Shown: positions 6,677-39,552 of the stretch, in pieces | Layout of the letters: each line of letters begins with the position of its first letter | Numbering within the stretch: the first letter of the stretch is position 1 | From: Podarcis vaucheri | Taxonomy: Eukaryota | Length of the DNA stretch: 64,000 nt | Assembly (NCBI GenBank): GCA_965113315.1 | Contig: OZ220368.1 | Reading direction: 5' to 3' (one strand) | The notes under the pieces: generated by a model | Databases searched by the model: none | What the model saw: the letters and a program-made list of their open reading frames with translations, nothing else | What the model was told of the DNA's origin: nothing | Program-made: the position numbers and the translations under genes

Positions 6677-8589
6677 ATATATTAGGAGAAAGCCACACTA
6701 AAATGTTGATGAATTTTCATGAGGGTTGTTTGTTTTTTAAAAAGAACATGTTTGTTTGTTTTTTAAAAATGCAAACTGATGTGGAAATATAGAGAATGGA
6801 ACTAAATATAGGAAAAATGAGAAACTGAGAGAAATTGAAATTGACATACAGTATTTGCCCATCTCTACATTGGTGTGACACCCCTCCCCCCATACACACA
6901 CATGGAAGTTTTAAGTTCCTCTGACATGTACCCACACATTCTAATCAAAGCAAGCATTCAGAAGCAGGTATGAAGCAGAACTGGTGACCCCCCCTTCAAC
7001 ATTTCCTTCAAGACAGGCATTACCTGCACACATTTTTCCTTTCATTTTCGCCCCCTCCTCTACAGTTCCATGCTTTTTATGGAACATCACAAGAACATCA
7101 GCTATTCCACTGGATTTTTAAAGGTCTCCTCCATTGCAGCACTGAACCCAGTGTTGATACTGCTGCCCCTGCCCACTGCTGAACCCAATTCTGAGCAAAA
7201 TTAAACCCTGTCACATCAGTGGAAGCACAGTGGGGTCTGACTCTTCCCCAGCCTTCCCCGAGAGCTTTCAAACCCTCTGCCTCCTCTTTCTTCACAACCA
7301 CCTGCTTATTGCTCCAGCGGAACCAGTGGCAGTGGGGAGGGGGGAGAAGTATGCTGTGTCCCCCCCCCAGCCCCCTTTGTCTGGCTACAACTGCAAGCCA
7401 GGTGCCAGAATCACTGGGAGATATAATTTTCCTAGCGCTACTGACAAATGGAGAAATTTCATATTTTGGGGCTGCTGGCACCTGGCTCACAGCCATCAAA
7501 GGAAAGACTTCATTTCAGAGTAGAATTTTCAAAGGTTGTTACGGGAGAACATAACAAGCAGCAGAAATTCATACTTCTGGGCAAAGGAGTACAAAACATT
7601 GATGATGAGTAGTCCTTGCCTATTCCAAAGAGTAGTGTCTCCTGACTCCAACTTTTCCACATTCTCATGAGCTAGACATTTGCCTAAAGCTCTGGTAAGC
7701 CCTGACATAAATATTAGCAAAGAGATGAGTTTTTTAAATGCATGTCTATCTAACTACCTACCTATCTACCAAGAGAAGCAGGGAGCTGAATCCAGCCAGT
7801 GGTCCAAATCATTACAACCCCAGCCCTTAACTCATCAGTTTTGACAGGTTGGTGGGGCTCTACACCAGCCATCATATGTAATAATATGTAGGTTTGCACT
7901 ACCAATTCATTTTGAACTACAAATTTCATGACTTCTTTCACTAAGTCATACAGTCTCTGTGGGGGTTCCTATTAGTACAAATTCCCCTCTGTCTGACAGG
8001 CATAGTCCATAAAGGATTTCTTTTCTGTTTCAGAAATCCTATAGCAAATAAGCAGCAAAGACTTATTGGCAGGCCTATTGTCAGGTAGCATCATTTGACA
8101 GTTGTCAGGGCCCCAGAGCCCTACCAAGGCTTAGTACCGATACCTTACTCTTAAAGGTTTGCACCAGGCAGTTGGGCTTGGGAGCTGCCATACTGACATC
8201 CCACAATGCCCCCAACATAACGTTGCTCTGGGACATTGGTGAGAAATGAAAATGGCAGCTGAGGCTGCTATGAAGAGGTCAGAGGCTGTGAGTCCTGGAA
8301 GAACTGTTCCCTTCCTTACAGGCCTTTTCTCACCTGGCCTGGGAGGGCGGGGACCTGACTGACTCCAGCTGCAGAAGCTGAGGCTGTTGAACAGACTCTT
8401 TGTTTGGGGGGATTGTTGCTGTTTATGATATTATTTTGTATCTTTATTTTAGATCTCACTATGGTTTATCTGGAATTTGCTTAATGTGGTTGTGTCCTTT
8501 TTGTTGTTTTATTTATTCTTTATGACTACAATGTTTTTAATTATGTATTTTTTTCCCATTTTATAAACTATCTTGAGCATGGTTTTGAC

Positions 8590-8725
8590 CAGGCTTCCTC
8601 AACCTCGGCCCTCCAGATGTTTTTGGCCTACAACTCCCATGATCCCTAGCTAGCAGGACCAGTGGTCAGGGATGATGGGAATTGTAGTCTCGAAACATCT
8701 GGAGGGCTGAGGTTGAGGAAGCCTG
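8590..8725. mobile_element. hAT-type palindromic MITE
   Basis: Long TIR caggcttcctcaacctcggccctccagatgttt / aaacatctggagggctgaggttgaggaagcctg; perfect 8-bp TSD GTTTTGAC at 8582-8589 and 8726-8733. Confidence 0.9.
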
Positions 8726-8850
8726 GTTTTGACTATGGAAAGGCAGCATACAAAGATAATTATGTATGTCTGTATATGCATTTCTGATTGCAACATTTCG
8801 AATAGTTTTTATTGTATGGTTTCATGTATACTTGTTATAGATTGCTATTA

Positions 8851-15765: not shown

Positions 15766-16006
15766 CAGTGATACCTCGGGTTAAGTACTTAATTCGTTCC
15801 GGAGGTCCGTTCTTAACCTGAAACTGTTCTTAACCTGAAGCACCACTTTAGCTAATGGGGCCTCCTGCTACCACTGCGCTGCTGGAGCATGATTTCTGTT
15901 CTCATCCTGAAGCAACGTTCTTAACCCGAGGTAACAGTCTGGGTTAGCGGAGTCTGTAACCTGAAGCGTATGTAACCTGAAGCGTATGTAACCCGAGGTA
16001 TCACTG
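15766..16006. mobile_element. Tigger/pogo-type MITE (same family as 31667-31900, opposite orientation)
   Basis: TIR cagtgatacctcgggtta / taacccgaggtatcactg; internal 16-bp tandem gtaacctgaagcgtat. Confidence 0.85.
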
Positions 16007-16339
16007 TAGATGCTTATCCTTGTACAGTAGGCAGACATGCAAAAACCAGATGCTTCTAAGCACTCATCTGTGCTTCAGTCAAGAGGTCACAGTTCAAGGA
16101 TACATTGCAGCCAGGCAAGTATATCAAGAAAGGAATGTAGTGGGGTTGGCAAGGGGCTGTGGCTTGGGGAAACCCTAGTGACTGGATAGAAAGACCTGAA
16201 GAACCTCATTCAGCCTCTGGACCTGAAGTTCCCCACCCACCACAGAAGACAATGCAGCTAAGTTGCTGTATGTGGAACCCCACGAAGAACCAGGTATTTG
16301 TATCCATCAGTGACCACTACAGAGTTAGACTGTAATTTG

Positions 16340-16720
16340 CAGGATTTGACATCTTTCCGCAGGGCCTGCAAGATGGAGTTGTTCCGCCAGGCCTTTGGTC
16401 AGGGCCCAGCCTGACTCCCCTTTTCTTTTTGTATAAGAGCTAATATGAAAGAGGCCTCACAGCATTCTCACAGGCCCATATAAGATCAGCATAAACAGTT
16501 GGGCCAATGCACACTTACTGTTCCCAGCCCTAACCCTGAGGAAAGCCATCTGATTAGACTTTAATTTGATTTTGACCTGTTTTTAGGAGGTAATTTAATT
16601 ATTGTTTGATTTTATAGCAGTGTTATATATCTGATGTTAGCCGACCTGAGCCTGACTTCAGCCGGGGAGGGCGGGATATAAATAAAAGTTTCTTATTAAT
16701 TTATTAATAATATTTATTTA
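16340..16720 (+). mobile_element. L2-like LINE 3' end
   Basis: Homologous to the reverse complement of 35720-35990 (caggatttgacatctttccgcagggcctgcaaga...ggggagggcgggatataaataaaa) with an AT-rich tail. Confidence 0.7.
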
Positions 16721-17949
16721 TTTATTTATTTAAAACCTGGAATATTGCACGCACAGGGAACAGATCCATACATAAGCAACTTCAATTGCTATGCTTCTTG
16801 AAATTCTACAAGTTCTCGATGAAATGGGCTTGGCATTTGCCTAACATTTGTACAAACCTCTGGTGGTGAGCGTTTAAGTATTGTTAAAATACAAACAGTT
16901 AAACATGAATGGTTCTAATAATATATGGGAGGAGGACGAAGCAGCTTCAAAGATGCTCTGAAGAAAGTGACAGCTCTTTTCAATGAACTTCATTTATTCT
17001 GCTCTGCAGATGAGAACTGAAAGCAGATTACTACAATAATTGAATGGGAATGTTTTGTTTTCATATAGGAAATAGAAATATTTATTGGACTTTTCTGGCT
17101 TCTTTCCATCACTGCTTTCAGTTTCTCTGTTTATCTCTCAGTTTGCTGTCATATTATTTATTATTGCCACAATTTCGTTAATCGCTAATCTTTTTTTCCT
17201 ACTCTTGATCAGGAAAGGGTTGGGGTTGTTGTTTTTTTGAGAAGTGTAGGCTGAAAATGCAAATTCCCATCTTTGAATAAGACAGTCTCAATCTGAGTCT
17301 GGTGACACCACCTTTGAGTTTTCCTGATGTGAAGGTACCATTTGTGCCAAGGGATCATAGAGATTTGTATTATTCTTGACTCCAAATAAGGGGAACTACC
17401 TACTACAAGGACAGTATGATGCAAGAATGCCTGTATTCCCTTCTCATATTTCCATTTTGTCTCCCAGGGTTCATCTTGTCTATCATTGGCTGCCAAACTG
17501 GCAAGGGTTGGCAACCAAGGATAGGGATACAGAACTGACCAGAGTAGCCTCCACCCTTCAATGAAATGCAAAAGAGAACATCTCAGTGACATTTTTACAA
17601 AGGACAGTCCATTATTTGAAGGACTGTCAGAGGATAGTTCTCTATTTGATAGCGTTCTTTAGTTGAATGTCTCTCTGGTCCAAGTCCAGTTTAAAGCAAA
17701 AGAACCATAAGAAAGGAGAGCAGGGTCTATGGAGAAGCCCATCAAAAGTTAACACCTAAATAGCCAACAGGTACATAGATCACCTGGTCACAGTCTTCCC
17801 CACTATGCAGAGATGAAGTGTACTTCTATTTAAATTATGGTAAATTATTTCTAATTTTGCATCCGATATCTGAATTTTAGGCCTCTTTGTCCTCTTATTT
17901 GGTGTTGTCTTGCACCATTCTATGGTTTTCTTCCACCTAGCACCAGACA

Positions 17950-20020: not shown

Positions 20021-22061
20021 ATAATGCTTTTCTCCACCCCACCCCACCCCCCCCCGCTAATATAAGCACTTCTATGCATACTTCACCTCAGTACATTCAT
20101 TTTTGTGCACATTATTTGTCTGGAGAATCTCACTGCAAAACTTGTAGAAGTGCAGGTTTCAAAGGATAGCTGTGTGCAGGATCAGCAGTGTGAGGAGGGC
20201 TCATGGCTCATGCAATTTGTGATGCAGCCCCCATCTGCACTATACATTTAAAGCAGCATCATACCTCTTTAAACAACATTCCTGAAAGAATTCTGGGAAG
20301 TATAGTTTGTTAAAGGGGCCAAGAGTTGCTAGGAGATTCCTGTTCTTACAGAGTTCCAACACTCAGAGTCCCTTGGGAAGAGGGATTGGTGGTTAAACTA
20401 CTCTGAAAACTGTAACTCTTTGAGGGGAATAGTGTTGGTGAAAACAAATGTCAGGGCCCTGACCAAACTTCAGTTCCCAGAATTCTTTGGGGGAAGGCGT
20501 GAATTCAGTTCCCAGAATTTGGAAGAAGTGGTACGATACTGCTTTCAATGCTTAGTGCAGATGGTACCTCAATTTTATTTTGAGGCCAGTGAGATTCACA
20601 CACCACAGTTCATTGCTCCATTTGGCCTGGTTGATCTCAAGCTGTACAGGGCTAGTTTATCTGCATTTTTAATCCATTAAAAAAAAAAGCTAGCATTTTG
20701 TTTGGGAATTATGTAATGCCAAATGGCTTGTTGCTCTTTTTGTTAGCGCATATTTTCCATTTAATAATTTAAAACACAATATCCAGCCCTTTGTCATAAT
20801 ACCAGGGCAGCATTTATGCAAACCTCCAGCTGGATGCATATTTATTGGCACCTTTGAATATACAGAGTTTACATTCCAGCTCTGTTTTATGCTTGCTTTC
20901 TCTTCCTCTCTGGTACATTGATGGTCGTGGGGCCATTATTGTTTCAAGTTATAAAATATGGATATCACTACCATGAATATTAGATCTCAATATATGGCCT
21001 TCTGAGGCAATTTGAACTGTATAAAACAATGTTTAAATACAGCTAACAGTGAAGAACTTTAAAAACGTGCACAGTAAGAACAAAAGGGCCGAGCAAATCA
21101 TGCAACAATGGACAAAATCAGGCAGTAGCAATAATGGAAAATGCTGAAACCATGGGGATGTCTCAATAGTATAGAGAACCGGGTATACTGTCATGGGACA
21201 GGAATCAGCTTCACCTGCAGAACAGCAGCCTGAAGAGAGAGGGAGTGATTCCACCTGCAGCTGATCAGCCTTCAAGGACACAGAGGAGAAGACACTGATG
21301 AGAACCAGCTGGCTTCAGCCTTCTCAAGCAGAGCCAAATGCTGGAAACACTGCTAGTAGTTCCTGGCTCTACCTTGCAGCTTCCTGCTCATCTTGACCCT
21401 GGACCCCATAATTATTGGATTCCTTGACCCTTGGACCATGTGGATTGCTGTTTGCCTTGGACTGGACCTAACTTTGGATGCTGATGCTGCCTCCAGGCAA
21501 GTACACCTCAGAGACTCTTCTGGTTGGCTGGTCTCCCACTCCACTGAGCTCATTGAATGAATGCACAGAGGCAATTATAGGTCCATCCCCCAATGAATGT
21601 GATGTTCACTGAAAAGAGTTGTTTGCATGTATGGATAGAAAGCTCCCACATGCAAGGAACAACCCCTGACTCCATTTAGCCCTGACGGAAGGTTTCCCAA
21701 CAGGGGAAGAGGTGTCCCCTGAAGCTGCCTGCACAAGAACCCATTTAGCCTGGGCTAGTAGGAAGGGTTGTGCCATGGGGACGTTACATGATTTCCAGCT
21801 TGGTCTGGATGTACACACAATAGGCTAGGCACTTCTCAGTTGCATGTACAACACATCACACGATAGGGCTGTTTACATATTACACTCAACAGATGTACAA
21901 TCGGCGTACCCGTGTACATAAGAAGTTGACCTGTACATTTGTACAGTTGTTTACACGTAGATATTTTTACTACGCAGCAACAGACCTGCTCCAAGCAGCT
22001 GTAAAATGTTAAAAGAAAGAAATATGCCACCTCAGACTTCCTTGTAGCTACATTTTTATTT

Positions 22062-22478
22062 GCGTGCTGAAGTCCCACAAAGCCCCTTCCCCAATAACTC
22101 AGACATCACACATAATTTTTGTTTGGTTTTTGGCATAATTTTGGCCACAACTTTATTTTATATACAGATTGAGAGTGGTTGCTTAGGCATTGGTTATGAC
22201 TACGTCCCCCCCCCGCCTTGGGGGACAGCACTGACTCCTTAGCCAGTCCCGGAGGAAACATGGTCAGAGTCAGATGGAGCTGCGTCACAGACTCTCACTG
22301 CTCCGCGCATGTTCCTTGAAGCTTACACGGCCCACACCCTGCCGTCAGGGTTTGGACGAGGGGGATGGTAAGCTTCAGAATTCCTTTAACGGAATACCCG
22401 TCTCAGCAGCATTGGAGGGGCAGGCACAGCCAATCCATACCCCTCCACCAACCAATTTTAACCAATGCCTAACCGCCA
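22062..22478 (-). repeat. Split direct repeat B2 (3' terminal)
   Basis: Matches 22863-23280 except a C9/C10 run and one A/G change (22334 vs 23136); AATAAA on the minus strand at 22152-22157. Confidence 0.96.
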
Positions 22479-22644
22479 ACCTTACAAGTTGTGACGATTT
22501 GCTAAGCAGTAGGCAAAACCCAAAAGGCACGCACTAATCAGCCAATTGGACAAATTCCTACTGGGCCCCCGCACCAAGGCGAACGACCCCATGACAGGCA
22601 AAGCAAGGTCAAAGCGCAAGCCCAAACAAGGGAGGGCGGGCGGG

Positions 22645-22862
22645 AGATCCGATGTCCACAGCAAAAGAGAAAGAGAAAGCTGTGGACCCTGCTTATATAA
22701 GGGGACTAAACCCACCCCTAAATTGGCAACATCAATTTTGCCCCAGTAACAGCTTTAACCAATCTGCTCCATCCCATTGCCCTCAATGGGCTGGTCACTA
22801 ACTGGGGGCTTTGTTTGGCCCCATCCGCAACACGTGCTCTCTCTTCTATGAGAACACGCTTT
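22645..22862 (-). repeat. Split direct repeat A2 (internal)
   Basis: Identical by eye to 29623-29840. Confidence 0.96.
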
Positions 22863-23280
22863 GCGTGCTGAAGTCCCACAAAGCCCCTTCCCCAATAACT
22901 CAGACATCACACATAATTTTTGTTTGGTTTTTGGCATAATTTTGGCCACAACTTTATTTTATATACAGATTGAGAGTGGTTGCTTAGGCATTGGTTATGA
23001 CTACGTCCCCCCCCCCGCCTTGGGGGACAGCACTGACTCCTTAGCCAGTCCCGGAGGAAACATGGTCAGAGTCAGATGGAGCTGCGTCACAGACTCTCAC
23101 TGCTCCGCGCATGTTCCTTGAAGCTTACACGGCCCGCACCCTGCCGTCAGGGTTTGGACGAGGGGGATGGTAAGCTTCAGAATTCCTTTAACGGAATACC
23201 CGTCTCAGCAGCATTGGAGGGGCAGGCACAGCCAATCCATACCCCTCCACCAACCAATTTTAACCAATGCCTAACCGCCA
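22863..23280 (-). repeat. Split direct repeat B1 (internal)
   Basis: Copy of B2; directly abuts A2 through the TTT core. Confidence 0.96.
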
Positions 23281-23309
23281 TTCGAGCCCTTACGCTCGCC
23301 GCCAACCAC

Positions 23310-23900
23310 TCACAAATTAAACCACACCCTCAGCCTGGACACTAGATCATCCAGCCACACATCATTCCCCAATGGCGAGAGATGAACCCCATCATCCCTG
23401 TAAAACTCAGTCGCCTTGAATGAAATCAGAGGGTGAGGAATTACAGCCCCACCCAGATTCACCACCAGCCTGCTTGCTGCGGAATTAATCCGCTTCCTTA
23501 CACGTTCCGTGGCGACTGGGCAAGGACTACCCCGCCAGATGCGGCGTTGCAACAGCTGTGACCAAATTAGCTTAGTTGACGGCACCCGTGCCGCCAATTC
23601 CCCAAGGTCCTGTAATATGGTAGCACGCAGCTCGTAGCAGGAAGAGGAAACCATATCGTTCTCCCCGAGCTGCACCACGATCGCTGAAGGAGGGCCACAT
23701 TGGAAGACACGCCTTCGCATGAGAGGTAACAATTCCCTCCACAGCATCCCCCTTCTGGAAATCCAGGACACCTGAACGCGGCGCGGGAATCCCAGGCCGT
23801 CACCCAGTCCGGACTGGCGAGCTCTGTCTGCAGCCCAGTGCACAATACTGTGCCCTACTATCCAAATACAGATAGCAGCCCGACCTAGGGTAAAACACAC
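23310..23900 (-). CDS. SGNH/GDSL-family hydrolase (esterase) of the Ngaro element
   Basis: Block I IWIVGHS (Ser), block II RGM (Gly), block III VQLGEND (Asn), block V DDGVHLS (Asp/His). The listed start is GTG and the first in-frame ATG lies after the catalytic Ser; probable exon start at 23884. Confidence 0.88.
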   Translation of the reverse strand: MCFTLGRAAICIWIVGHSIVHWAADRARQSGLGDGLGFPRRVQVSWISRRGMLWRELLPLMRRRVFQCGPPSAIVVQLGENDMVSSSCYELRATILQDLGELAARVPSTKLIWSQLLQRRIWRGSPCPVATERVRKRINSAASRLVVNLGGAVIPHPLISFKATEFYRDDGVHLSPLGNDVWLDDLVSRLRVWFNL

Positions 23901-23921
23901 ATATGTAAGTACAACAACACA

Positions 23922-24892
23922 TTATTTCCTCACGTAGGTTCTGAATGCATCCGAACGCCACCGACCCAGGTCCTTTATCCTCTTAACTGACAAACCCCAG
24001 TGAGCGGCAGTTGTAGCCGCCCCAATCCTAAACGAGTGAGGGGCAAACTCAGAAGCCGGGAGGCCGCAAGCCTCCACAGCTTTTCGCAACACTCCCGCAA
24101 ACTGGTGTCTCACCAGCGGGCGGCCATTTTCGTGTATGAACAGGGGCCCTTCGCCACCAGGGCGCAGGGCTAAATACTTCTTAAGGTCCTTCACCGGGCA
24201 ATGGCCACCTTCGCCCGTCGCAGGAAGTGTAATGACAGCGCCCCTACCTAGTTGATCCGTCTTTGAATTCCTGACGTGAACCTGCAGGTCCCTTGAAGAC
24301 ACACTCACATCCTGCATCAACAAACCCCTGGAACCTCCGTCCTGCTTGGGCTCGAGGACCACTTCGCCAACCCTCAGGGCCCCAAAGAAAGTTAACGAAA
24401 AGGCTGCTGAAAATAGCCGAACCTCAAATTTCGACCAACAGATGCTCCGCAGCTTAGACCGCATCTGCGCCAGCAATTCAAATGTAATGGGTCGCCTGGA
24501 GACGGGCCTGGAAGGAGTGAGTCGCCCCCATCCCTCCAGGGCCCTACGCACTACAAACTTCTTACACGGATCTTTATTAAAATATGCTTTACTAAAAAAG
24601 GAAATTGCTGCAGAATGCAGGCGTAGGGTCCTAGCTGCACGACGCATCTGGAATAGATGTGCCAGATACCGGAGCACCTGAGAGGTGGAGTGGGGGGTGG
24701 TAACCTCCCCAGCAGGCTGCCCACTAAATAACAAAAAGTCCGCCCAGGCCTTTTTATAGGACCTCAAGGTAGAAGGTGCCACAGATGCAGCTACTCCCTG
24801 TAAGACTAAGTTCTGCCAAGGTTCCAGAGATGATCCGGGAAAATTTCCGGACGGTCTCGAGCCACTGGCACCAGGGACCTGAAACGCTCCAT
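23922..24892 (-). CDS. Tyrosine recombinase (lambda-integrase family)
   Basis: GALRVGE (Arg), SKTDQ (Lys), HSFRIGAAT (HxxR), GRWRSDAFRTY (Trp, Tyr). The ORF-track start at 24782 is GTG; the frame is open upstream to the candidate acceptor at 24892. Confidence 0.95.
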
Positions 24893-26581
24893 CTGAAAAC
24901 GGGACAGAGCATCAGCAATTTCGTTAGAAATTCCTGGGACAAAACGGGCAGAAAAAACAATGTTAAAACGCAAGCAATGCAAGACGAAGGCCCGAAGAAG
25001 GGCAGATACCCGAGGGGATCGTGAAGACTGCTTGGCCAGTACATTCACCACCGCCTGGTTATCAGTCCAGAAACAAACACGGTGATCCCTAAATTGTTCG
25101 ACCCACAAGTGCACTGCCACTACAATGGGGAAAAACTCAAGAAAGGTTAAGTCCCTGGTTATAGCCTGCCCCCTCCATGCAGGAGGCCAGCGCTCAGCGC
25201 ACCACCTGCCATCCCAGTACAAGCCAAACCCTAAGGACCCCGCAGCATCCGAATGCACTTGGAAGTCGTTGTGGAGGTTCAAAGTGTCCTGCCACAAGGA
25301 CACCCCGTTGAATTCCTCCAAGAATTCCAACCAAATAGCAAGGTCAGCCCGTACCTGAGCAGGAAGGCGGACCCTGTGATGCGGGGCCTGCAGGCCCGAG
25401 GTGAGTCTGGCCAAGCGTGAACAGAAAGGTCGCCCGGGAGCGACCACCCTGCAAGCAAAGTTCAGGTGGCCCAGCAAAGACTGAAGTTGCCGCAGGGAGA
25501 CCTTCTTTAAAGGAATCATCTCTTCGATGACCATTCTTAAATTGGTTATTTTCTCAGGAGGCAGGCTAGATGTTTGAGCCACGGTATCTAACAAGATACC
25601 CAGGTAAGTCAGCTTGGTAGAAGGACCCTCGGTCTTCTCAGCCGCTAACGGGACGCCCAGCTCTTTCGTTAAGGAAGCGAAGGCTTGCAATAAGACCACA
25701 CAATCCCCCGTATTGCCTGCAGAGGCGACCAAAAAATCATCAAGATAATGCGTGACACCGCTTAAACCGGTTTTTTCACGTAAAGCCCATTCCAAAAACG
25801 AACTAAAACTCTCAAAGGCCGCACAGGCAACTGAGCAGCCCATGGGCATAGCCTTATCGAAATAAAAACTCCCTTCGAACTGAAATCCCAGCAACCAAAA
25901 ATCATCGGGATGAATAGGAAGCAGCCGAAATGCTGATTCAATGTCGCATTTTGCCAGTAAGGCGCCTGGCCCAAATTTTCGGATCATCTTGATTGCGTGA
26001 TCCAAAGAAGCATACCTCACTGAACAAAGCTCCGGGGGAATCACATCATTTACTGATGTGCCTCTGGGATGTGAAAGATTATGTATTAGGCGAAATTCCC
26101 CCGGGGCTTTTTTGGGAACTATGCCCAAAGGTGAAATATGCAAATTGGGAAATGGAGGGACCGCAAATGGACCGGCCATGCGACGTAAAGCTAGTTCCTT
26201 GCCAATTTTTCTTCGTGCCACCTCTGGCATATCCCTAATCGATTTCTGGTTGGCTGGGTTTCTGGCAACCGGGGTAGAGACCACCGGGATTCTAAAACCT
26301 AAAGAAAAACCTTCGCGCAAATAAGACGCCGCCTTGGCATCGGGGTACAACTCCAACAAAGAAAGCAGCGGCTGTAGCCTTACCGGGGTGTAAGCTAAAG
26401 AGGAAATCAAGCTACTTCCCTGCTCCCCCGGCAGGGGCTTGGGCTGCGGTTTTTGGGGGCTGTTGAGAGCCCCCCCCTTTTCGAAAGGGGCGGCGGCCAG
26501 TCTGGCACGCGGACCCGGAATGGTTCCCTGAACACTTATCACACGCATGTGCGTATTTACAAGACTGCCGTGTGCAAGCAC
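24806..26581 (-). CDS. Reverse transcriptase / RNase H
   Basis: SPLGIVPKK, FRLIHNLS, KCDIESAF, MPMG and HYLDDF RT motifs; SDAAG, LEFFPI, TDN and ADALSR RNase H motifs. Overlaps the gag end in the +1 frame; the listed start is GTG. Confidence 0.96.
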   Translation of the reverse strand: MLAHGSLVNTHMRVISVQGTIPGPRARLAAAPFEKGGALNSPQKPQPKPLPGEQGSSLISSLAYTPVRLQPLLSLLELYPDAKAASYLREGFSLGFRIPVVSTPVARNPANQKSIRDMPEVARRKIGKELALRRMAGPFAVPPFPNLHISPLGIVPKKAPGEFRLIHNLSHPRGTSVNDVIPPELCSVRYASLDHAIKMIRKFGPGALLAKCDIESAFRLLPIHPDDFWLLGFQFEGSFYFDKAMPMGCSVACAAFESFSSFLEWALREKTGLSGVTHYLDDFLVASAGNTGDCVVLLQAFASLTKELGVPLAAEKTEGPSTKLTYLGILLDTVAQTSSLPPEKITNLRMVIEEMIPLKKVSLRQLQSLLGHLNFACRVVAPGRPFCSRLARLTSGLQAPHHRVRLPAQVRADLAIWLEFLEEFNGVSLWQDTLNLHNDFQVHSDAAGSLGFGLYWDGRWCAERWPPAWRGQAITRDLTFLEFFPIVVAVHLWVEQFRDHRVCFWTDNQAVVNVLAKQSSRSPRVSALLRAFVLHCLRFNIVFSARFVPGISNEIADALSRFQMERFRSLVPVARDRPEIFPDHLWNLGRT

Positions 26582-27938
26582 CCTTATTGAAATCCCAGCA
26601 AAAAAACTTTTTTCCCAACCTGGTAGGGGCAGCCTTAAACTTCTGGGAGTCAGGGGCCTTCTTCTCTATTCGGGGGGCCACATAAGTGGTCCAGACATCC
26701 AAGTCCTTCCGATCCCAGCGGGCCGTAGGGATCTTAGCCGCCCTACGCCTAAAATTCTGGTCGTAAGCTAGCGCAGCAGTTTCTCCAGCCATTGTGAAGG
26801 TGGAACGGACAATGGACAGATACACCCAAAGATGCAATGATCTCCTGGGGTAGGCTGCGGCCACAACTCCAGCAAAAACCTGAAAACTATCTAGCCAACG
26901 CTCGAAGGTCCTGTCGGCCTTAGCTATGATTGACCGCTTCTTTGGAGCAGGCAGGCCCTTATCCAGAGGCTCCTGACCTTCCAACGGGGGAGCTAAGCTA
27001 AAGATATCAACGTAGCGGCCGTCCAAGATCCTTGAGCGTAATTTGGCGGACAGGTGAGCCCCCGGAATAATGTCCCTGGCCGAGTTGGTAGAGACTTTTA
27101 CATCCGGCACCAGGACCCCTTCAAGGCAGTCTAACACTGCCCCATATCTGGCCCTATGGGAGTTCGCCCTCCGCTCCCAAACCCATTTTGGAAGCCCCGA
27201 GGCTTCCCCAAAACCCCAGTATAACTTAAGGTGCGCTTCCTCATCGCTACTCGAACTCTGGGATGACTCACCTGATGAAGAGGACGAGGTGTCCCTACGC
27301 CTCTTCTTGGCACGCCTCCTTGAACTTCTCTTATGGCGGCGATGACCACCTGAGGACGTCTTCGGAGGGAGAGGGAGGCTATCCTCGACCGACGATTCTG
27401 ATGCGTCACCCTGCTGCGAAGTGGCTGGAAGTGACTGAAAAGACACAACCTGTGAATGACCAGGAATCGCTCTGCCTGCAACTGCGGGCTGCGCAGGCCA
27501 ACCCCGCACAACAAGGCCCCGTGCAGGTGCCCTTCTCCTAGCCCCCGCCCGGGCAGAGACCCGACCCCGTGGCACGGCCACCTGCGACACAGGCGGCACC
27601 GAGGACTGAGCCTGTGGCACGTCAGGCAAGTAGCCACTGGCTGGCACTGGCTCTTCCTCTTCTTCACTGGATGAAGACGGTGGAAGCGGAGCATCCACAG
27701 GGGGAGCCAGCATAGCAGAAGAAGTTGACGGGGTCGAGTGGCGATGCATCAGGCCATCCAGCTCCGCCTCCATCCTTGCCAGAGACACCGGGTCACCAGC
27801 CAAACTAGAGACCCTGGATTGGACTCGTTGTAAAGACTGGCCAGGTTGAGGAGAACGCAGAGCCTGAGATGGGCCTTTTATGGGCCGCTTAGCAGAGAGG
27901 GGAGGGGCCGACTTCCTTGTCGCCTTTTTTGGAGCCAT
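26412..27938 (-). CDS. Gag-like ORF1 (508 aa)
   Basis: ATG at 27938 in good Kozak context (GCAGGCATGG); low-complexity basic N-half with NLS-like RRHKRSSRRRAKKRRR; C-terminal C-x7-C-x4-C-x3-H followed by C-x2-C-x3-H-x4-C zinc fingers. Confidence 0.9.
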   Translation of the reverse strand: MAPKKATRKSAPPLSAKRPIKGPSQALRSPQPGQSLQRVQSRVSSLAGDPVSLARMEAELDGLMHRHSTPSTSSAMLAPPVDAPLPPSSSSEEEEEPVPASGYLPDVPQAQSSVPPVSQVAVPRGRVSARAGARRRAPARGLVVRGWPAQPAVAGRAIPGHSQVVSFQSLPATSQQGDASESSVEDSLPLPPKTSSGGHRRHKRSSRRRAKKRRRDTSSSSSGESSQSSSSDEEAHLKLYWGFGEASGLPKWVWERRANSHRARYGAVLDCLEGVLVPDVKVSTNSARDIIPGAHLSAKLRSRILDGRYVDIFSLAPPLEGQEPLDKGLPAPKKRSIIAKADRTFERWLDSFQVFAGVVAAAYPRRSLHLWVYLSIVRSTFTMAGETAALAYDQNFRRRAAKIPTARWDRKDLDVWTTYVAPRIEKKAPDSQKFKAAPTRLGKKFFCWDFNKGACTRQSCKYAHACDKCSGNHSGSACQTGRRPFRKGGGSQQPPKTAAQAPAGGAGK

Positions 27939-28619
27939 GCCTGCTACTGGCTTTGGACAGAAAATCAAATAAGAGGAAATAAAACAAATGAAATTAAGTC
28001 AAAATTAAATAGAATTAAATAATAATACAATAAAATAATACAATACAAATTAACGAATTTTAATAAAATAATAAACAACCAGCAGGCAGGAGAATAACCC
28101 CAACGCCCCAAGCGTATTCAGAGGCTTAGTCAGTGGTATAAGCAACAGGGATTAACAGGCAAACCTGAACAGGTAAAATTCAACAACCCCTGCAATACCA
28201 GATTGGCCACTAGAGGCCACTGCGGTGCGCAGCTAACACGAGCAGGCCCTGCAGTTACCAGATCCGGCCAGCAGGGGCCTCTATTAGTGAAACGGGGCAA
28301 GATGGCGCTCCCGCCAAAATTGCCCCCCGCAATTGGGGGATCACAAGTGAGGCTGGGCCAGGAACCAGGGATCGATTCAGCAGGAGCCCCCCAAGCGCCG
28401 ATGAGGAGGCCCAGCGGCGCAGGTAAGGGCTCCGCAGCTCTCACGGCCCCCCGCCGGCACCCCTAGAGGGCCCGCAGGGACGGGAGGGGCGAGAGAGGAG
28501 GGGGAAAGGTGGAAAAACTGCTCCCCCGTTCGGGAGCCGAGAGGCCTCCACGGGCCTCAAAACGAGAAAGGCGGCCCGGGCCGCCCAAGCCTCGGCCGCA
28601 GCAGACCCCCGCGCCACCG

Positions 28620-29150
28620 GAGGCGGCCCGCGGCGCGGCAGGCCTGGCCGGATGGGCACCCCCGGCGGGCCGCGCGCAGCAGCCGCTGCAGCAGCGAGCC
28701 CCGGGAGCCCCTAGGCCCCGATGCCGGGAAGGCGGCCTAGGCCAACGGCGCGGCGCGGCAGGCCCGGCCGGATCCGGCCCAGGCGCGGGCGATCGAGACG
28801 CCCCGGCGGGCCGCGCGCAGCAGCCGCTGCAGCAGCAAGCTCCGGGAGCCCCTAGGCCCCGACGCCCGGAAGGCGGGCCAGGCCGCGCAGGCCCCCTAAC
28901 CGCGCCGAAGCGGGCCGGGGCCGATCGCCGCGCCGCCGGACGCGACCAACGGCGCAGCGCGGCAGGCCCGGCGGGATCTGGCCCAGGCGCGGGCGATCGA
29001 GGCGCCCCGGCGGGCCGCGCGCAGCAGCCGCTGCAGCAGCGAGCTCCGGGAGCCCCTAGGCCCCGACGCTGGGAAGGCGGCCCAGGCCGCGCAGGCCCCC
29101 CAACCGCACCGAAGCGGGCTGGGGCCGATCACCGCGCCGCCGGACGCGTG
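28620..29150. repeat. GC/CpG-rich imperfect tandem repeat in the element's 5' leader
   Basis: Block ccccggcgggccgcgcgcagcagccgctgcagcagc at 28660, 28801 and 29005 (periods 141 and 204 bp). Confidence 0.9.
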
Positions 29151-29622
29151 AAGGCGCCTCCCCGCGGGCCACAGTCAACCGCAGCGGCGGCAGCGAGACC
29201 CAGGGGAACTCAAACGTGAGTAAGGGGGAAGGGGGGAGGGTGGGTAACAGCCGAACCGCAGCCGCCCCGCAGCAGCGGTAGGCCCCGGGAGCGGTAGGCC
29301 GTGGGTCAGTAGGCAGGCTCTAATGGCCAGGGATAGCCGGGCCAGATACAGCAGGGACCCAGCCCCCGCCGGCCAGAGCCTTCCCGGCCCGGACAACGGC
29401 TCGGCCGAGACCGGGCCGTAGCCAGTCGGGACCGGGAGATCACCCCCCCCCCAGGGAGAAGACAGGATAAATTAACAGGGAAGAAAATTAAATTAATAAT
29501 AATAATTCAGAAAAAATTAACTTAACCAATCGCTTGGGGATAAATTGAATTAGGAAGGAAAGAAAGGTAAAGCTAAGATCAATACGACCAAGATTTCTCT
29601 CGCTGTTTCACTCCGGTGTAAA

Positions 29623-29840
29623 AGATCCGATGTCCACAGCAAAAGAGAAAGAGAAAGCTGTGGACCCTGCTTATATAAGGGGACTAAACCCACCCCTAAA
29701 TTGGCAACATCAATTTTGCCCCAGTAACAGCTTTAACCAATCTGCTCCATCCCATTGCCCTCAATGGGCTGGTCACTAACTGGGGGCTTTGTTTGGCCCC
29801 ATCCGCAACACGTGCTCTCTCTTCTATGAGAACACGCTTT
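29623..29840 (-). repeat. Split direct repeat A1 (5' terminal)
   Basis: Identical by eye to 22645-22862. Confidence 0.96.
29645..29745 (-). promoter_or_regulatory. Putative Pol II promoter in repeat A
   Basis: Palindromic CTTATATAAG (29670-29679), upstream CCAAT boxes (~29700-29704 and ~29737-29741) and a pyrimidine-rich stretch 25-30 nt downstream on the minus strand. Confidence 0.6.
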
Positions 29841-31666
29841 GTTTGTAGAGCTATATGGATTTTTATAAAGGATTTTAAAGAATTTTCACTAAAAAGATCC
29901 ACCCACAAATGAAACAAGATGGAGCCTGGCACAGGATGGAAATATGGCAAAACATGTTCTCCTAGTTGTATGTAGTTGCTTAGGCCAATACAAAATGGTG
30001 GCGTGAGGCAGGCCATGTTCATGGCATGGATGGACTTGGATGCTTTAAATGCCCCATTCAGGATCCACTTCAGACTCGACTCTAACCTAAAAAGATCTGG
30101 ACGCCACTGTGACATGGACCCAAAATCTGGAGTTTACCACCACTTGTAGCTACTGCATAGTTTTCTGCTTGGCATCCTGGTTAGTTTTCTAATGAACTTT
30201 GGCAGGTATCAATAACTCCCAGCTTCATAGCCCACTTCCATGGCTAGTCTTTTGGAATTTGCTACCCTTTCAGTTATTGCTCTGAATCAGCTTGTGTTTG
30301 TTGGGTTGCTTTGATTTGAACAAGATCCCTGGTGTCACCTCACAACATGACTTTTTGTTTGCAGATAAGGTTTACAGACTATTCTGTGTCTTGCCTCTTC
30401 AGGTTTATCCTATGATATAGATTTCCCCAATGTCTCGCATTGTGTGTCATATGTAAGAAGATAAAAGGTTTTTGTGTTTCTTCCCCCCAAAATAAAGATG
30501 CTTTAAGTACTCACAGAGGATTGCACGCATCCACCTGAATCTAAAGAGCCAGGTAGTGGTTCTATCCATCAATGGCTTTTGTTTTTTAAAAAAGAGATTC
30601 CTGCAAGCAGTTGGTTGATTGATGAAACTTCGTGTCTCTGTGGAAACTCTGGCAGAAAGTGCACTCTGTTCCTAAGTGGCTTAGAGCTGCCACTGCTGGG
30701 TCTTGTTCTGATAGCTCCAAGGTTGTGATACATATTCAGTAAAGGCTAGGCAACATCTGCCAAGACTGGACCACATCCGTGTCTGCAGTAGAGCAGGGGA
30801 GGGGGGGACCTTTACAGCTCAAGTTTCTGAAGGCTACATGCCACTGGTGAGCAAGGCCAGTGGCAAAAGTGGATTGAGCAAAAAGTGTAGCCTACATTCT
30901 GTTGCGGGTTTCAATACTCACCCGCATACACACATCTTTCCATCCATTTAAACAAGAGGTTCTCTCAAAGTTCAAGAATGTGCAGAAGCACTTGAAGATG
31001 TGGAACAGAGCCACTGAGAAGTGCAGACCTTTCAAGTGTCCCTACTTTCCAGGGACAGTCCCGGATTTACAGAAGCCATCCTGGTTTCTGATTTGATCCT
31101 GGAATGTCCCACTTTTCCTTAGGATGTCCCGATTTTCATCAGAGAAATCTAGGAGAGTATGGTAGGACATCCTATTTTCATGGGAGAAATGTTGGAGGGT
31201 GTGGAGTTATGCGACCCCTGAGCCAAGGAGAAAAGTAACTGTACAACCTTTAGAAGACTTCCGATGGCTCCCCAGTACAGGGAAGTTTTAAAATGTTTAA
31301 TCATGTTGTTTGTATAGGCTGGAAGTTGCCCAGAGTTGCTGGGGCTACCCAGTCAGATGGACGTGGTATAAATGTTGTTGTTGCAGTTTTCAACTGCAGG
31401 GTATGGAAGTGTGTGGAAATTGGGGTATGTGGCCTGGGCTGGGTTACAGAGGACTGGAGGGCCATGTTTTTACCCCCAGACCAAAGGTTTCCCATTCCTG
31501 CGGTAGAAGAAAGTCATGATTAACATTGCATGGTATGATGGCATTTAAACTGATGACATGAATGGTGGGGATAAGGCTGGTTTCCGCTAGGGCTTGTCCC
31601 CTTGAGGAATGCTCTATTATTTCCCATCCATGAATTTTCAGGTTTCATTCCAAAGAAAAAACTGTA

Positions 31667-31900
31667 CAGTGGTACCTCGGGTTACAGACGCTTTGGGTTA
31701 CAGACGCTTCAGGTTACAGACTCCGCTAACCCAGAATTAGTACCTCGGGTTAAGAAATTTGTTTCAGGATGAGAACAGAAATTGCGCGGCGGCAGCAGTG
31801 GGAGGCCCCATTAGCTAAAGTGGTACCTCGGGTTAAGAACAGTTTCAGGTTAAGAACGGACCTGCAAAATTAATTAAGTTCTTAACCCGAGGTACCACTG
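31667..31900. mobile_element. Tigger/pogo-type MITE
   Basis: TA|cagtggtacctcgggtta ... taacccgaggtaccactg|TA, perfect TIR with TA TSD. Confidence 0.9.
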
Positions 31901-34900
31901 TATAGCTAAAATAAGATATAAGGAAAAGCACACAGGCAGTGTTGTAAGCAGTTGCTCACTAAGCAACACAATCAAACAACAAACATGTTAGCTTTCTTAT
32001 ATTTATGTTTTGGCTGCTCTGCAATGATTCACTGCTGCCAAAGTTCCCCTTCACCATAATGTTTCTGCCTACAGTGCTAGGCAGAGACAATCTGGTTTAG
32101 GATATTGAAGGGGATGCCAAAACAATGAGGACTGTCACAACTTGAAGACATGAAAATGCTTTTTAGAGCTATTAAATACAGAATTATTTGGGCCTATATA
32201 CCTGATTCTGTGCAAAACAGTACATGTAATCAATACAGGTTAGTGAAAGTTGAGGGAGAGAGACCAAATTTTGGGCACAGCAGCTGCTATAGATAGATGC
32301 TTTCCTCCAAAGATGATTTCTCTCTTTTATAGGCTGATCCTGCTTCATAGCACTGGAAGTAGAAGACAGCAATTATTTGTTTCATATAATTATATTCCTG
32401 GGAGCCATGCCTATTTTTTTTTCAGATATTTGCCACTAAATGCCAGATGAGCTTTGTGCTTAATTTCCATAGGAGGCAACTATGTATCTTGTTTTTCCTC
32501 AACCTACTATAAGGAAATGTAGAGTCAGATGTTCATTGTGAAGAGAGCATGCAGGAAGGAATTACTTTGCTCCCCGACTAAGATCAAGCTGGGGAGCCCG
32601 ACAAACACGGCTGGATGACTTGTGAATGGAGATATTCATTCATTCATTCATCCATTCATTCATAACAGTATTTCTACACCACCATATCATAAAATATCAA
32701 TATGATGTACAGCAGTGTTTCCCTAAGTGTGGTACTCAAATACCCAGGGATACATGACATGGTTTCAAAGGGTACATGGCAAAAAAATGTAGAACATTAT
32801 CACAGTTGTTTTAACTGCAGAAAATTATTCAAAGATAAAATAGTCATTAAAACTACCTCCAAATTATCTTAGCTGAAGAAGGGGTACCCCAGTAAGACTA
32901 AACTTTCTAAAGGGTTACACAATCATTGTAGGTTTGGGAAACACTGGTGAAGAGCAGTAGAAAACAAAACACCATTAAAAACCTTACAAATAATCTTGAA
33001 AGTGGCTGGCTAATAAATTTAAACAGCTCCAAAGGCCTGTTGGCATAAAAGGGACTTCCAGACATCCCTGAAAATCAAAAGCGAGAATCCCTGCAGATTC
33101 GTGTTCTTATGTACCTGTATTATTTTATATTTCAAGGATGTCCCATGATCATATTATAAAGCAGTTATGTTCTGTGCTATAAATCAAGCACTGTTAGGGG
33201 TTATTTCTTCTTGTTTTTCCAATCTATTTTCCATCAATAAAAATTCAGTATGGTTCAAAAAACTTTTTATTCTGAAAGAAGAAGAAATTTGGGTTAGAGT
33301 CTGTCAGAAACCTCAAGCTTGTTACTGACATTGCTTCACAACAATAGGGAGGTGTTGTGCAGTGGGGTGAGCCTTTGAACGAAGGAGCAATTCCTTACCA
33401 GACTTGCTTTTCATATGAATTCTGGTCCCCAGGTTGTCAAGGAAAGGTCCGGGGGGGGGGAGGTGGGCGCTCAAGTTCCTTACAGGAAATTTTGCACCAA
33501 AATTAACATCAAAGTTGTCCCCAGACTCAGAGGTATAGGAGACGAAGCCAGTGACAACATTTGACAACAGACATTTTCTTTTGGCATGGCTACTGATGTT
33601 TGCCTAGGCTCCTTGTTTGCTCTTTGTCACCTTTGATTCTCTCACCCCAGCCCCAATTTCAACATTTTAAATATATATTTTGAAAGCTGAAGATGAACTT
33701 TTCATTTATCATCCCACACTGAAAGTGTGTGTGAGACAAAGGGGACTGGATGGGAGAAATAATCTTTTTACAATCCAAATGCATCACTGTTATGCCAAAT
33801 TTTCATTGCAGAAGTTCGTGCAGTGGTCAATCCTTATCTGCAGAGCACAGAGATTAGAGCAGGTTTCTAAAGGTCTTCAGATTTTTAAATGTGAGCTTTT
33901 CTCTACAGCGTGCATCCATTTGCTAACACACACACCCCTGATGACGTCTCAGTTTCTCTTAACAGGGGCATATGAGCTTATCACATTTGCAAATGTACAG
34001 ATGAGTCAAAATTGGGAAGAAGAGCAATGACTAGGTTGGACGGGATGCAAACTCAAAGAGAAGTAGGAAACAGTGAGGAATTGCTGGGGGAAAAGAGAAT
34101 AAAGACTATCTTTATTCCTTGCCCCCCCCCAGTTCTTCTCTTTAGGACGGCTTACACATTCAGCTCAAAGGCTTGTTTATGTGTTACAATGAATAAAAGA
34201 ACAGATGGTTTTTATGCATGTACAAGTTTTTCCTATGAAAGTGTACACTTGTTGAGTTGCACAGCACAACTATTGTGTACAGTGACTGTACACTCAGTGA
34301 CTGTAAGATGTGAACCTGTTTAAATATTTGGAGGTTGTAACCAGTGTTAGTTCTACTCAAAGTAGGCTCATTGAAAGTAATAAACATGACAATCTTAGGT
34401 TCATTTATTTCAATAGGTCAACTCTGGAGACAAGTCTTTGTCTGGACTTTGTTCCCATGTACCAATTCTCTACAGAGCCACTGAATAACCAGCATTTTCG
34501 GTATGTCAGGTTAGTCATGTAGCTTGGCCCTTAGAGAAAGTTCGTGAGAGAACAGCGATTTGTGAGCTGGTTCTTGAGAGTAGGTGGAATCTGTTAAGCA
34601 AAGTGTCTAATGATGATCCTGCCACAGTAAATAACTTCATTTTCAAAAAGATTAAATCCATCTGCAGGCACAATTTTTTTAAAGGTTATCTCTGAGTTCA
34701 GTAGGTATAGTGTACTCTTATCAAACCCAAAGAGCTTGCCATGGGTTTGATAACCCTTAAGCCTCCCCTGTTTTCACATTTCTGCAAGGAGGCAAGAGAG
34801 AGAACCAAATTGGAAATAATTGCCTCCTGCAGTAACAGGTTTATCACCATGAAAATATGATTCGTTCCCCTGGAATGTATGCTACTCTCAGATCATCTTG

Positions 34901-35680
34901 TGCTTCCCCGTTAACTTAGAAATTACATCAGATAGAAGATCCCAGAGAACTCCTTGCTGAGGCCCCCATTTGGTGCCATAATAGAGAGAATTATTGTGAA
35001 GGCAGGAATTGCAGGCTGCTAAGGAACGAACACAAAAGTGGTTGTGGCCTCCATCACAAGAAGATATACACAGCTCTGTTATGCGCTCTGCTTTTATTTC
35101 TTTGTTAGATTTTTGCACACCAATATGTTGCTTTTTTGTTTTTGATGTTATTTAATGGCAAGCACCTGCAAATCTACTTGCCAGTTTGCCTGGGAAGAGC
35201 TTCTCACTAGATGCAGAGCATCTAGCAGTACACAACCCCCACCCCCCAGAAGCAAAGAAAATAAGAAGTGTCCTTTTGGATCAAGCCGTAGGCCCATCGA
35301 ATCTATCATTGTGTTCTCTTAGTGGCCAACCAATGGCCTTTGGGAAGCCACAAGTAGGACATAAGCACAATAGCACCAAGCCTACTGGTAGAGCCCAACA
35401 CTTGGTACCCAGAGATATACTACCTGCAGTGCTGAAATTGGTACACAGCCATCATGGTTAATAGTAATTGCCAACTTTATTCCTCTGGCATATTTCATAA
35501 AGCCTCTCAGAGTCACCCAAGTTGATGGCCATCACTAAATCTTGCAGCAAGAAATGCCATAGTTTAATTATTCACTGTCGGAAGAAGTTCCTTTTGTGTG
35601 TCCTGAGTCTTCCAGCATTTGGATTTATTGAATGACTCTAATTATGTAAAGGGGAGAAAATTTCTATTTTCTGATGCTAT

Positions 35681-35682
<2 letters not shown>

Positions 35683-35731
<49 letters not shown>

Positions 35732-36125
35732 TTTATTTATATCCCGCCCTCCCCAGCCGAAGCTGGGCTCAGGGCGGCTAACAACAATCAAAATAACTCA
35801 ACATTCTAAAACATTCATTATAAAATTAATTAAATCAAATTAAAATCAAATTAATGGCAACCATCAAGCAAAATTTTGTGCAGATTGCCAGAGGAGGGGG
35901 TCAGGCTGCGCCCTGACAAAAGGCCTGGTGGAACAGCTCTGTCTTGCAGGCCCTGCGGAAGGATGTCAAGTCCTGCAGGGCCCTAGTCTCTTGTGACAGA
36001 GCGTTCCACCAGATTGGAGCCGCGGCCGAGAAGGCCCTGGCTCTAGTTGAGGCCAGCCTAACCTCTCTGAGGCCTGGGATCTTTAGGGTGTTTTTATTTG
36101 CAGACCGTAAATTTCTCTGTGGGAA
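35683..36125 (-). mobile_element. L2-like LINE 3' end with (AAT)n tail
   Basis: Peptide RARAFSAAAPIWWNAL...SFRRACKTELF; microsatellite tail at 35683-35729. Confidence 0.8.
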
Positions 36126-39100: not shown

Positions 39101-39552
39101 CATCGCCTCTTAAGCACCATGCTGCTGGTGCAGCAGGTCACAGGATTAGGCCATTAGGGTATAAATATTTTTCATGACAAAGTGGCAGCACAGTTAATGG
39201 AGTTTTTGATATATTTGTGGGGGGAACCCAACAACTTGCTAAACATTTGCGGTGTCTGTAAAGCAAGAAACCTGCTTTGAGTAGGATTGAACCCAGACTA
39301 TTCCTAAAGGTTTGTTTTTGGATACAGGAAATATTAGCTTATGTGTGTGTATCACACTCATTCCACCAAAACTGATAATTTTCAAGGGTCGATGCAGTTT
39401 CTAAGCAAGTACACACAGCATATAGTTGAATGATGGAATTGGCTACAACACAATGTTGTGATGGCCACCAATTTGGCCTTAAAATGAGATTAAATGACGA
39501 ATAATGGCTATTAGTCACAATGGCTATAAACTACTTTCAGGAACATATGCAG

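Follow-up and report, generated by a model that had tools for sequence, protein, structure and literature searches.

A conserved multi-hairpin RNA domain in the B repeats of a Ngaro retrotransposon from Podarcis vaucheri

Introduction

In elements of the DIRS order (DIRS, Ngaro, PAT, and VIPER), the initiation of reverse transcription by RT, the selection of the RNA, and the rebuilding of the element ends are unsolved; the primer for reverse transcription is not known, a hairpin at the 3' end having been suggested for DIRS-1 (PMC7192593). A stretch of 64,000 nucleotides of Podarcis vaucheri DNA (GenBank assembly GCA_965113315.1, contig OZ220368.1), referred to here as the window, contains a Ngaro element whose B repeats hold a set of paired segments enclosed by a long stem. 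An earlier note, made from the letters of the window, had described these segments as a multi-stem structure of about 290 nt that covaries between two families of the repeat, and had proposed that they form a selected, cis-acting RNA. The locus raises the question of whether this fold is maintained by selection, on which of the two strands it acts, and which step in the replication or expression of the element it could serve.

The host element and its repeats

The minus strand of the window carries a complete Ngaro element with gag, RT, tyrosine recombinase (YR), and SGNH hydrolase genes in the layout A1...B1-A2-B2 (Table 1). Four features by which Ngaro elements are recognised were found, i.e., a YR, an RT upstream of the YR, split direct repeats arranged as A1-(ORFs)-B1-A2-B2, and an SGNH ORF after the YR. 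The homologues of the hydrolase in lizards (Podarcis, Lacerta, Phrynocephalus, and Hemicordylus) are annotated as SGNH hydrolase-type esterases. The two A repeats (A1, 29623-29841; A2, 22645-22863) are 100% identical and the two B repeats (B1, 22860-23280; B2, 22059-22478) are 99.5% identical by blastn, while a spacer of 166 nt, U (22479-22644), lies between A2 and B2 and is missing after A1.

The window also contains a remnant, at approximately 39551-40340, that holds B, U, and A of a second, diverged family, called family 2 here, the complete element being family 1. By blastn, this remnant matches family 1 only at 22114-22208 (79%), 22380-22405 (92%), and 22460-22673 (73%). The spacer U is also conserved in family 2 (39946-40110). 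No third B copy was detected in the 64-kb window by nhmmer and motif scans, the sole find being a weak third Ngaro remnant at 2-104, which matches the U spacer (nhmmer E 3e-4, model positions 495-601) and is cut by the window start, so that its B part lies outside.

Other repeats occur within and around the element. The leader of 1.65 kb from A1 to the gag ORF contains tandem repeats of 204 nt with 82% G+C at 28582-29130, and a 236-aa plus-strand ORF in this place is without a Pfam match. Several inverted repeat pairs of 82-100 nt, 76-90% complementary, flank the Ngaro insertion at 15-19 kb (15766-16726 with 31651-35977), and a separate hairpin repeat with 60-nt arms is found at 8588-8727; all of these are probably copies of other interspersed repeats.

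Table 1. Features of the Ngaro element and of its structured domain. Positions are those of the window; the stems in plus letters and the GU-rich stretch were read from the sequence.
Feature	Position	Strand	Remarks
Gag-like ORF with CCCH finger	26412-27968	−	
RT ORF	24806-26581	−	upstream of YR; PF00078, E 1.4e-13
Tyrosine recombinase (YR) ORF	23922-24782	−	PF00589, E 6.9e-7
GDSL/SGNH-like hydrolase ORF	23310-23900	−	after YR; weak GDSL match, E 6e-4, below Pfam's cutoff
Structured domain, B2 copy	22183-22472	−	sense 1-290; sense position p = plus coordinate 22473-p
Structured domain, B1 copy	22984-23274	−	against B2, one substitution and one extra G; same fold
Homologous domain, family 2	39675-39941	−	MFE −125.2 kcal/mol, z −5.83; covariance-model matches R1 and R2
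AAUAAA poly(A) hexamer	22152-22157	−	25 nt after P1; conserved in family 2
GU-rich stretch	22091-22112	−	likely downstream polyadenylation element
P1, 5' arm (sense)	22459-22472	−	partner 22183-22196, perfect 14 bp
P1, 3' arm (sense)	22183-22196	−	partner 22459-22472
H1 hairpin	22413-22447	−	sense 26-60; 14 bp in family 1, 11 bp in family 2
H2 hairpin	22380-22395	−	AUUCC-GUUAAA-GGAAU; identical in both families, as is the GGGU 5' flank
H3 two-tier hairpin	22317-22377	−	sense 96-156; double changes: 4 in outer stem, 3 in inner stem
H4 long two-tier hairpin	22253-22316	−	sense 157-220; 26 bp in family 1, 25 bp in family 2
H5 hairpin	22226-22251	−	family 1 only; mapped pairs broken in family 2; insertion in covariance model
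H6 hairpin	22208-22225	−	UCCCCC/GGGGGG in sense
Closing stem P1	22183-22196 / 22459-22472	plus letters	TTAGGCATTGGTTA / TAACCAATGCCTAA; perfect 14 bp
Stem GTCCCC / GGGGAC	22204-22209 / 22221-22226	plus letters	
Stem CTGACTC / GAGTCAG	22231-22237 / 22267-22273	plus letters	
Stem GGAGC / GCTCC	22276-22280 / 22300-22304	plus letters	
Two-tier stem, outer	22317-22326 / 22368-22377	plus letters	TGAAGCTTAC / GTAAGCTTCA
Two-tier stem, inner	22336-22341 / 22346-22351	plus letters	ACCCTG / CAGGGT
Hairpin ATTCC-TTTAAC-GGAAT	22380-22395	plus letters	
Stem of H1 region	22413-22420 / 22440-22447	plus letters	TGGAGGGG / CCCCTCCA

Architecture of the domain

Every stem listed in the earlier note is found in the sequence at the place given for it, and the six arms that it had described are all present on the plus strand. 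However, two of these arms, CTGACTC/GAGTCAG and GGAGC/GCTCC, are not conserved pairings, and as conserved helices they were rejected: their letters belong to H4 and H5 in the sense fold that is common to family 2. Since the compensatory changes back H4 rather than these two arms, the topology was revised to include one long two-tier hairpin, H4. In the remnant of family 2, the closing stem ATAGGCTCTGGTT (39675-39687) / AACCAGTGCCTAT (39929-39941) was borne out, two of its pairs being compensatory and one mismatched relative to family 1, and the remaining pairings that had been named for 39675-39941 are present as well.

The arm order is identical in the independent MFE folds of both families, i.e., P1, H1, H2, H3, H4, and a variable terminal part. 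P1 comprises 13-14 bp in family 1; in family 2, 12 of 13 pairs persist, two of them through double changes. In H1, both letters differ in four pairs and a single letter in two. The AUUCC/GGAAU pairing of H2 is invariant and this hairpin shows high depth in related genomes, where a common variant, 22396 A>T, lengthens the stem; an alternative pairing of this segment, GACGG/CCGUU, which is the choice of the family-1 MFE fold, is broken in family 2 and was discarded. The inner loop of H3 reads ATTC instead of CCGT in one related-genome contig, all four loop letters being replaced with the stems intact. As for H4, the eight pairs at 168-175/200-208 are all still paired in family 2 according to a structure-blind alignment, four of them through double changes. 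The terminal part consists of H5 and H6 in family 1 and of a single two-tier hairpin in family 2, whose inner stem occupies the H6 site with other letters (CCUGCA/UGUAGG); a third family, seen as a loose end in the related genomes, has yet another pairing there (TCTGTCC/GGACAGA).

Folding stability

A folding energy better than that of shuffled controls had been set in advance as a test that could refute the structure, and it holds for both families when MFE z-scores are computed against 200 dinucleotide shuffles. The sense strand of 22183-22472 (290 nt) folds with −133.7 kcal/mol (z −5.28) and its antisense with −111.1 kcal/mol (z −4.02), whereas the sense strand of 39675-39941 (267 nt) reaches −125.2 kcal/mol (z −5.83) and its antisense −94.8 kcal/mol (z −3.48). 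When the whole element is tiled in sense windows of 290 nt, the B domain has a z of −4.06, the joint lowest together with window 22763-23052 (also −4.06 in the tiling, and −4.3 when computed separately), where the B1/A2 junction is found along with a portion of the domain copy in B1; the remaining windows range from +0.8 to −2.9. Moreover, P1 still closes the domain within 500-550 nt of B2 or B1 context, 200 nt of upstream sequence being included for B2.

The B1/A2 junction has structures of its own. A long sense-strand hairpin runs across it (22800-22895, outer stem GGGGCUUUGU/ACAAAGCCCC), and the junction itself lies within a small palindrome, CACGC-AAA-GCGUG; this hairpin is probably an att-like site.

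Conservation and covariation between the two families

Covariation was assessed from the two full-length families of the window together with fragmentary variants from related genomes. The identity between both families is 53-57% in four MAFFT modes. When the MFE pairs of family 1 are mapped onto family 2 through the default MAFFT alignment, 16 of the double-changed pairs are kept and 9 are broken, in comparison with approximately 7 kept and 12 broken in a slid control where the partner is moved by 1-3 columns; this structure-blind mapping recovers P1, the outer stem of H3, and most of H4. RNAalifold gives a consensus energy of −75.6 kcal/mol (SCI 0.58, z −10.2) with the MAFFT-only alignment and of −87.7 kcal/mol (SCI 0.68, z −14) with a structure-guided one, while column-shuffled alignments reach approximately −29 ± 4.4 kcal/mol and none out of 120 shuffles attains the observed energy. 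The consensus contains 71 pairs, of which 41 are unchanged, 8 have changes on one side, and 21 have double changes, with no broken consensus pair; the consensus folds of shuffled alignments include 9.5 ± 2.5 double changes (maximum 16).

Covariance models point in the same direction. The model for H1-H2-H3 (domain I; 133 positions, 40 pairs), which was built from family 1 alone and with which the whole window was searched, finds family 2 over its full length at 39803-39922 (R1) with 33.1 bits and E 1.3e-6, whereas a sequence-only model of the same segment obtains 20.8 bits and covers only positions 25-106, thus structure adds roughly 12 bits. In the domain I alignment, which was fitted by the covariance model and therefore to the structure, 11 of 40 pairs are double-changed (0-1 in slid controls), and the share of paired cells is 94.8%, in comparison with 32-52%. 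The H4-H6 model gives a weaker signal (13.1 bits, E 0.18 in 8 kb), and its best match is the exact syntenic place, 39696-39805 (R2), adjoining R1, with H4 and H6 aligned and H5 replaced.

The two properties expected from a conserved structured RNA, stability beyond that of shuffled sequences and compensatory substitutions, are thus found together in two full-length families, and the proposal that the structure is under selection is supported, base pairs being maintained with different letters in the second family. The multi-hairpin domain of about 290 nt is very probably a selected RNA signal of the Ngaro element.

Strand preference and variants in related genomes

The sense strand has a lower energy and a better z in both families. 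Its consensus includes 10 G.U cells among the 71 pairs, which are C.A on the cDNA strand, in comparison with 62 pairs and 6 G.U cells in the antisense consensus (−60.8 kcal/mol, z −9.3).

Contigs of three runs from other organisms, and the RNA reads of one run, were aligned to 21950-22900 at 80% likeness. Coverage reaches very high values in 22110-22205 and 22366-22620 and is 10-20 times lower in 22206-22365, which indicates that the end blocks (poly(A) module, P1, H1, H2, and U) are common to many families, the centre, H3-H6, being fast-changing; the same pattern of conserved ends and fast-changing centre is seen between the two families of the window. Among the variants listed inside the domain, which are linked within contigs that derive from repeats, 18 of 23 fall at unpaired consensus positions, 49% of positions being paired. 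Among those listed at paired sites, four of five turn an A-U or G-C pair into G.U on the sense strand and would be C.A mismatches on the opposite strand. The reading on the sense strand of the element, already preferred in the earlier note, is therefore upheld by energies, z-scores, G.U pairs, and related-genome variants; the energies and the four sense-only G.U variants favour an RNA of this strand.

The RNA reads over the region number 69, come from both strands, and belong mostly to other families. Their depth spans U and B2 and falls to zero upstream of ~22621, and a palindromic TATA, TTATATAA, is found at 22693-22700; the restriction of RNA depth to U-B2 suggests a start site in A2, downstream of this TATA, and a short U-B2 RNA. 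The B-proximal part of U (22462-22525) is the deepest segment in related genomes, with depth that is high and uneven up to 22621, and the spacer contains CCAAT-type motifs (AATCAGCCAATTGG).

Position near the poly(A) signal

On the sense strand, the domain begins 6 nt into B, the repeat boundary at 22478 lying 6 nt beyond the closing stem as had been described, and ends 25 nt before AAUAAA, in agreement with the earlier placement upstream of a poly(A) signal. The hexamer is directly downstream of the domain in both B copies, and is followed by CA dinucleotides, the GU-rich stretch, and then the rest of B down to 22059. Polyadenylation in B2 would end the RNA approximately 45-60 nt past the domain, without the last 70-80 nt of B. 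In the replication model of Ngaro elements, missing ends are restored from B1-A2, and an RNA shortened in this manner would fit that established model. In an RNA with its end in B2, no other structured element would stand between the domain and the poly(A) tail, and B1 would supply a further copy.

A further stem is possible in the B2 context only, between CACAACUU at the end of U (22493-22486) and AAGUUGUG (22153-22146), a segment that includes the final two A of AAUAAA. This pairing, weakened in family 2, might set the poly(A) sites of B1 and B2 apart. The motif GGUUGGCGG recurs upstream of B1 (23281-23330, sense), with a small hairpin, CGAGC-GUAAGG-GCUCG, standing between it and the B1 start; thus, both B contexts offer a GGUUG able to pair with the CAACC just 3' of P1.

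Comparison with known RNA families and retroelement signals

The Rfam search that had been proposed for the structure finds no existing family: the domain copies of both families were compared with the 4227 families of Rfam 15 and none came near its gathering threshold (best E 0.16-0.19). The best match, MIR528 (E 0.19), scores 21.7 bits where its gathering score is 62, and nothing has E < 0.1 in either family. The searchable literature on Ngaro and DIRS elements describes the repeats and contains no RNA structure or cis-acting RNA element for Ngaro. Given these negative results, the domain would represent a new RNA family of a familiar kind, the cis-acting folds found towards the ends of retroelements.

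Searches for related sequences and for other explanations of the letters were also negative. The invariant 20-mer of H2 has no match in viral contigs, and a 19-mer of it has nine matches in metagenome contigs that were all dismissed as chance, their flanks being without similarity. In collections of viral and genome contigs that exclude vertebrate genomes, no relatives of the YR protein were found, and the 87-aa chance ORF of the domain, used as a query for further copies, gave no candidate. A coding role of the domain was rejected, since it holds short chance ORFs only, which differ between families. As for a primer, ARAGORN detects no tRNA or tRNA-like gene in 21500-30200, and neither primer-like complementarity nor a free or fold-back 3' end was found in the domain. 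B begins with a TGG-initiated sequence that is not the same in the two families, and the partner arm of P1 changes compensatorily, so that the sequence fits a stem and not a tRNA match.

Several known systems resemble the domain in part. The R region of retroviruses, with the TAR and poly(A) hairpins of HIV-1, is likewise a cis-acting fold in a terminal repeat that carries the poly(A) signal and occurs twice in the RNA. However, the Ngaro domain is of 290 nt and six arms, shows no sequence or model similarity to R, and has both copies in the 3' part of the RNA (B1-A2-B2); with both B copies 3' of the ORFs, the repeat is not found at both RNA ends as in an R region. The 3' UTR folds of non-LTR elements (R2, and the stem-loops of stringent-type LINEs) are likewise conserved as folds while their letters change quickly, lie at the 3' end of the RNA, and serve as an RT landing site, a role that by analogy may be proposed for the B domain, but Ngaro is a YR retrotransposon with gag and an LTR-type RT, and R2_retro_el does not match. 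The constitutive transport elements (CTE) and RTE of simple retroviruses and IAPs and the epsilon signal of hepadnaviruses are structured RNAs of reverse-transcribing elements that act in cis and lie close to the 3' end or within terminally redundant RNA; their likeness to the B domain is in position only, and none of their defining motifs was found in it. The 3' hairpin of DIRS-1 shares with the domain the element order, the 3' location, and the question of how reverse transcription starts, yet the primer proposed by Poulter and Goodwin is a single short hairpin (as cited in PMC7192593). The Ngaro B domain, in contrast, is a 290-nt multi-branch structure inside a direct repeat, where no fold-back 3' end is seen.

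Possible functions of the domain

The structure, its conservation, and its preference for the sense strand are observed, and they mark the 290 nt as a domain of the Ngaro sense transcript that folds on its own and is under selection. As to its role, the domain is quite possibly a cis-acting 3' replication signal recognised by RT and/or Gag, a reading that is put forward tentatively. It is favoured by the combination of an invariant H2 with its GGGU flank and a conserved P1/H1 on a changeable scaffold. In this mechanism, P1 (13-14 bp) would enclose H1-H4, the variable H5, and H6, the stems acting as a scaffold that evolves by compensatory change, while the invariant H2 (GGGU-AUUCC-GUUAAA-GGAAU) and the conserved P1/H1 side would be the likely contact sites. 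The RT and/or Gag of the element would then bind the domain in cis as a 3' recognition platform, and through this binding minus-strand cDNA synthesis could be initiated and/or the RNA could be chosen for packaging. The domain is also internal, in B1, and a pure 3'-end signal does not require that copy.

Alternatively, the domain could be a processing, export, or stability element of the 3' UTR, either by promoting the export of unspliced or partly spliced RNA in the manner of CTE, RTE, or PRE signals, or by tuning the identical poly(A) sites of B1 and B2. Its place immediately upstream of AAUAAA in both copies and the B2-only pairing of CACAACUU with AAGUUGUG over the hexamer are what such an element would show, but this B2-specific stem is weakened in family 2 and no Rfam family has similarity in sequence or model, so that this role seems somewhat unlikely. 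Selection might instead act on the single-stranded minus-strand cDNA (plus letters), where the fold could protect an end, prime the second strand, or present recombinase sites. Linear single-stranded cDNA is a real amplification intermediate of DIRS-1 (PMC7192593), and the plus strand folds with a z of −5.2 in family 1 when DNA parameters are used, the antisense z-scores with RNA parameters (−4.0 and −3.5) and the antisense consensus (z −9.3) being significant as well. However, the DNA fold is weaker in family 2 (z −2.8), the sense consensus has 9 pairs more and its 10 G.U cells become C.A on the cDNA, and at paired sites all four variants that preserve the structure would be mismatched on that strand; a cDNA function is accordingly judged improbable.

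A role in strand transfer, in which the fold would help the nascent cDNA to switch between B2 and B1, keep the copies identical, and rebuild the ends, agrees with the location of the domain in a repeat of which the RNA carries two copies with 99.5% identity, and retroviral R regions are themselves structured and carry the poly(A) signal. Nevertheless, both B copies lie near the 3' end and not at opposite ends, the sequence marks no transfer point, and a homology-driven switch needs no structure, which makes this role very unlikely. Even less probable is that the stretch has no function of its own and folds by composition or history, being rich in palindromes and G+C, or that it consists of protein-bound DNA inverted repeats. 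P1 and H2 are conserved in sequence and thus carry little covariation, and perfect DNA palindromes fold on both strands, but the z-scores already refer to dinucleotide shuffles, 21 double compensatory changes coexist with no broken consensus pair, variants avoid paired sites, and the six separate hairpins contain G.U pairs. Lastly, retroelements of other groups, e.g., Penelope-like elements and R2, carry ribozymes, and a self-cleaving or otherwise catalytic RNA could be envisaged here; the ribozyme families of Rfam have no match even at E up to 10, and such an activity is barely credible.

Implications for Ngaro and the DIRS order

If the domain is a cis-acting 3' replication signal, a bolder extension of this reading is that it represents the missing RT initiation site of YR retrotransposons of the DIRS order, which is regarded as a long shot. 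The RT would dock on the invariant H2/P1 side and begin the minus strand at that place, and priming would be carried out by a protein or by a nicked hairpin, as with the epsilon signal of hepadnaviruses. To our knowledge, a tRNA primer-binding site has never been found in the DIRS order, and an initiation site of this kind, if real, would account for that absence. The compact, conserved domain offers a concrete object for studying how the RT and Gag of Ngaro elements recognise their RNA and how their cDNA is started. Moreover, as the seed of a covariance model, it could be used to annotate Ngaro termini and non-autonomous derivatives in vertebrate genomes.
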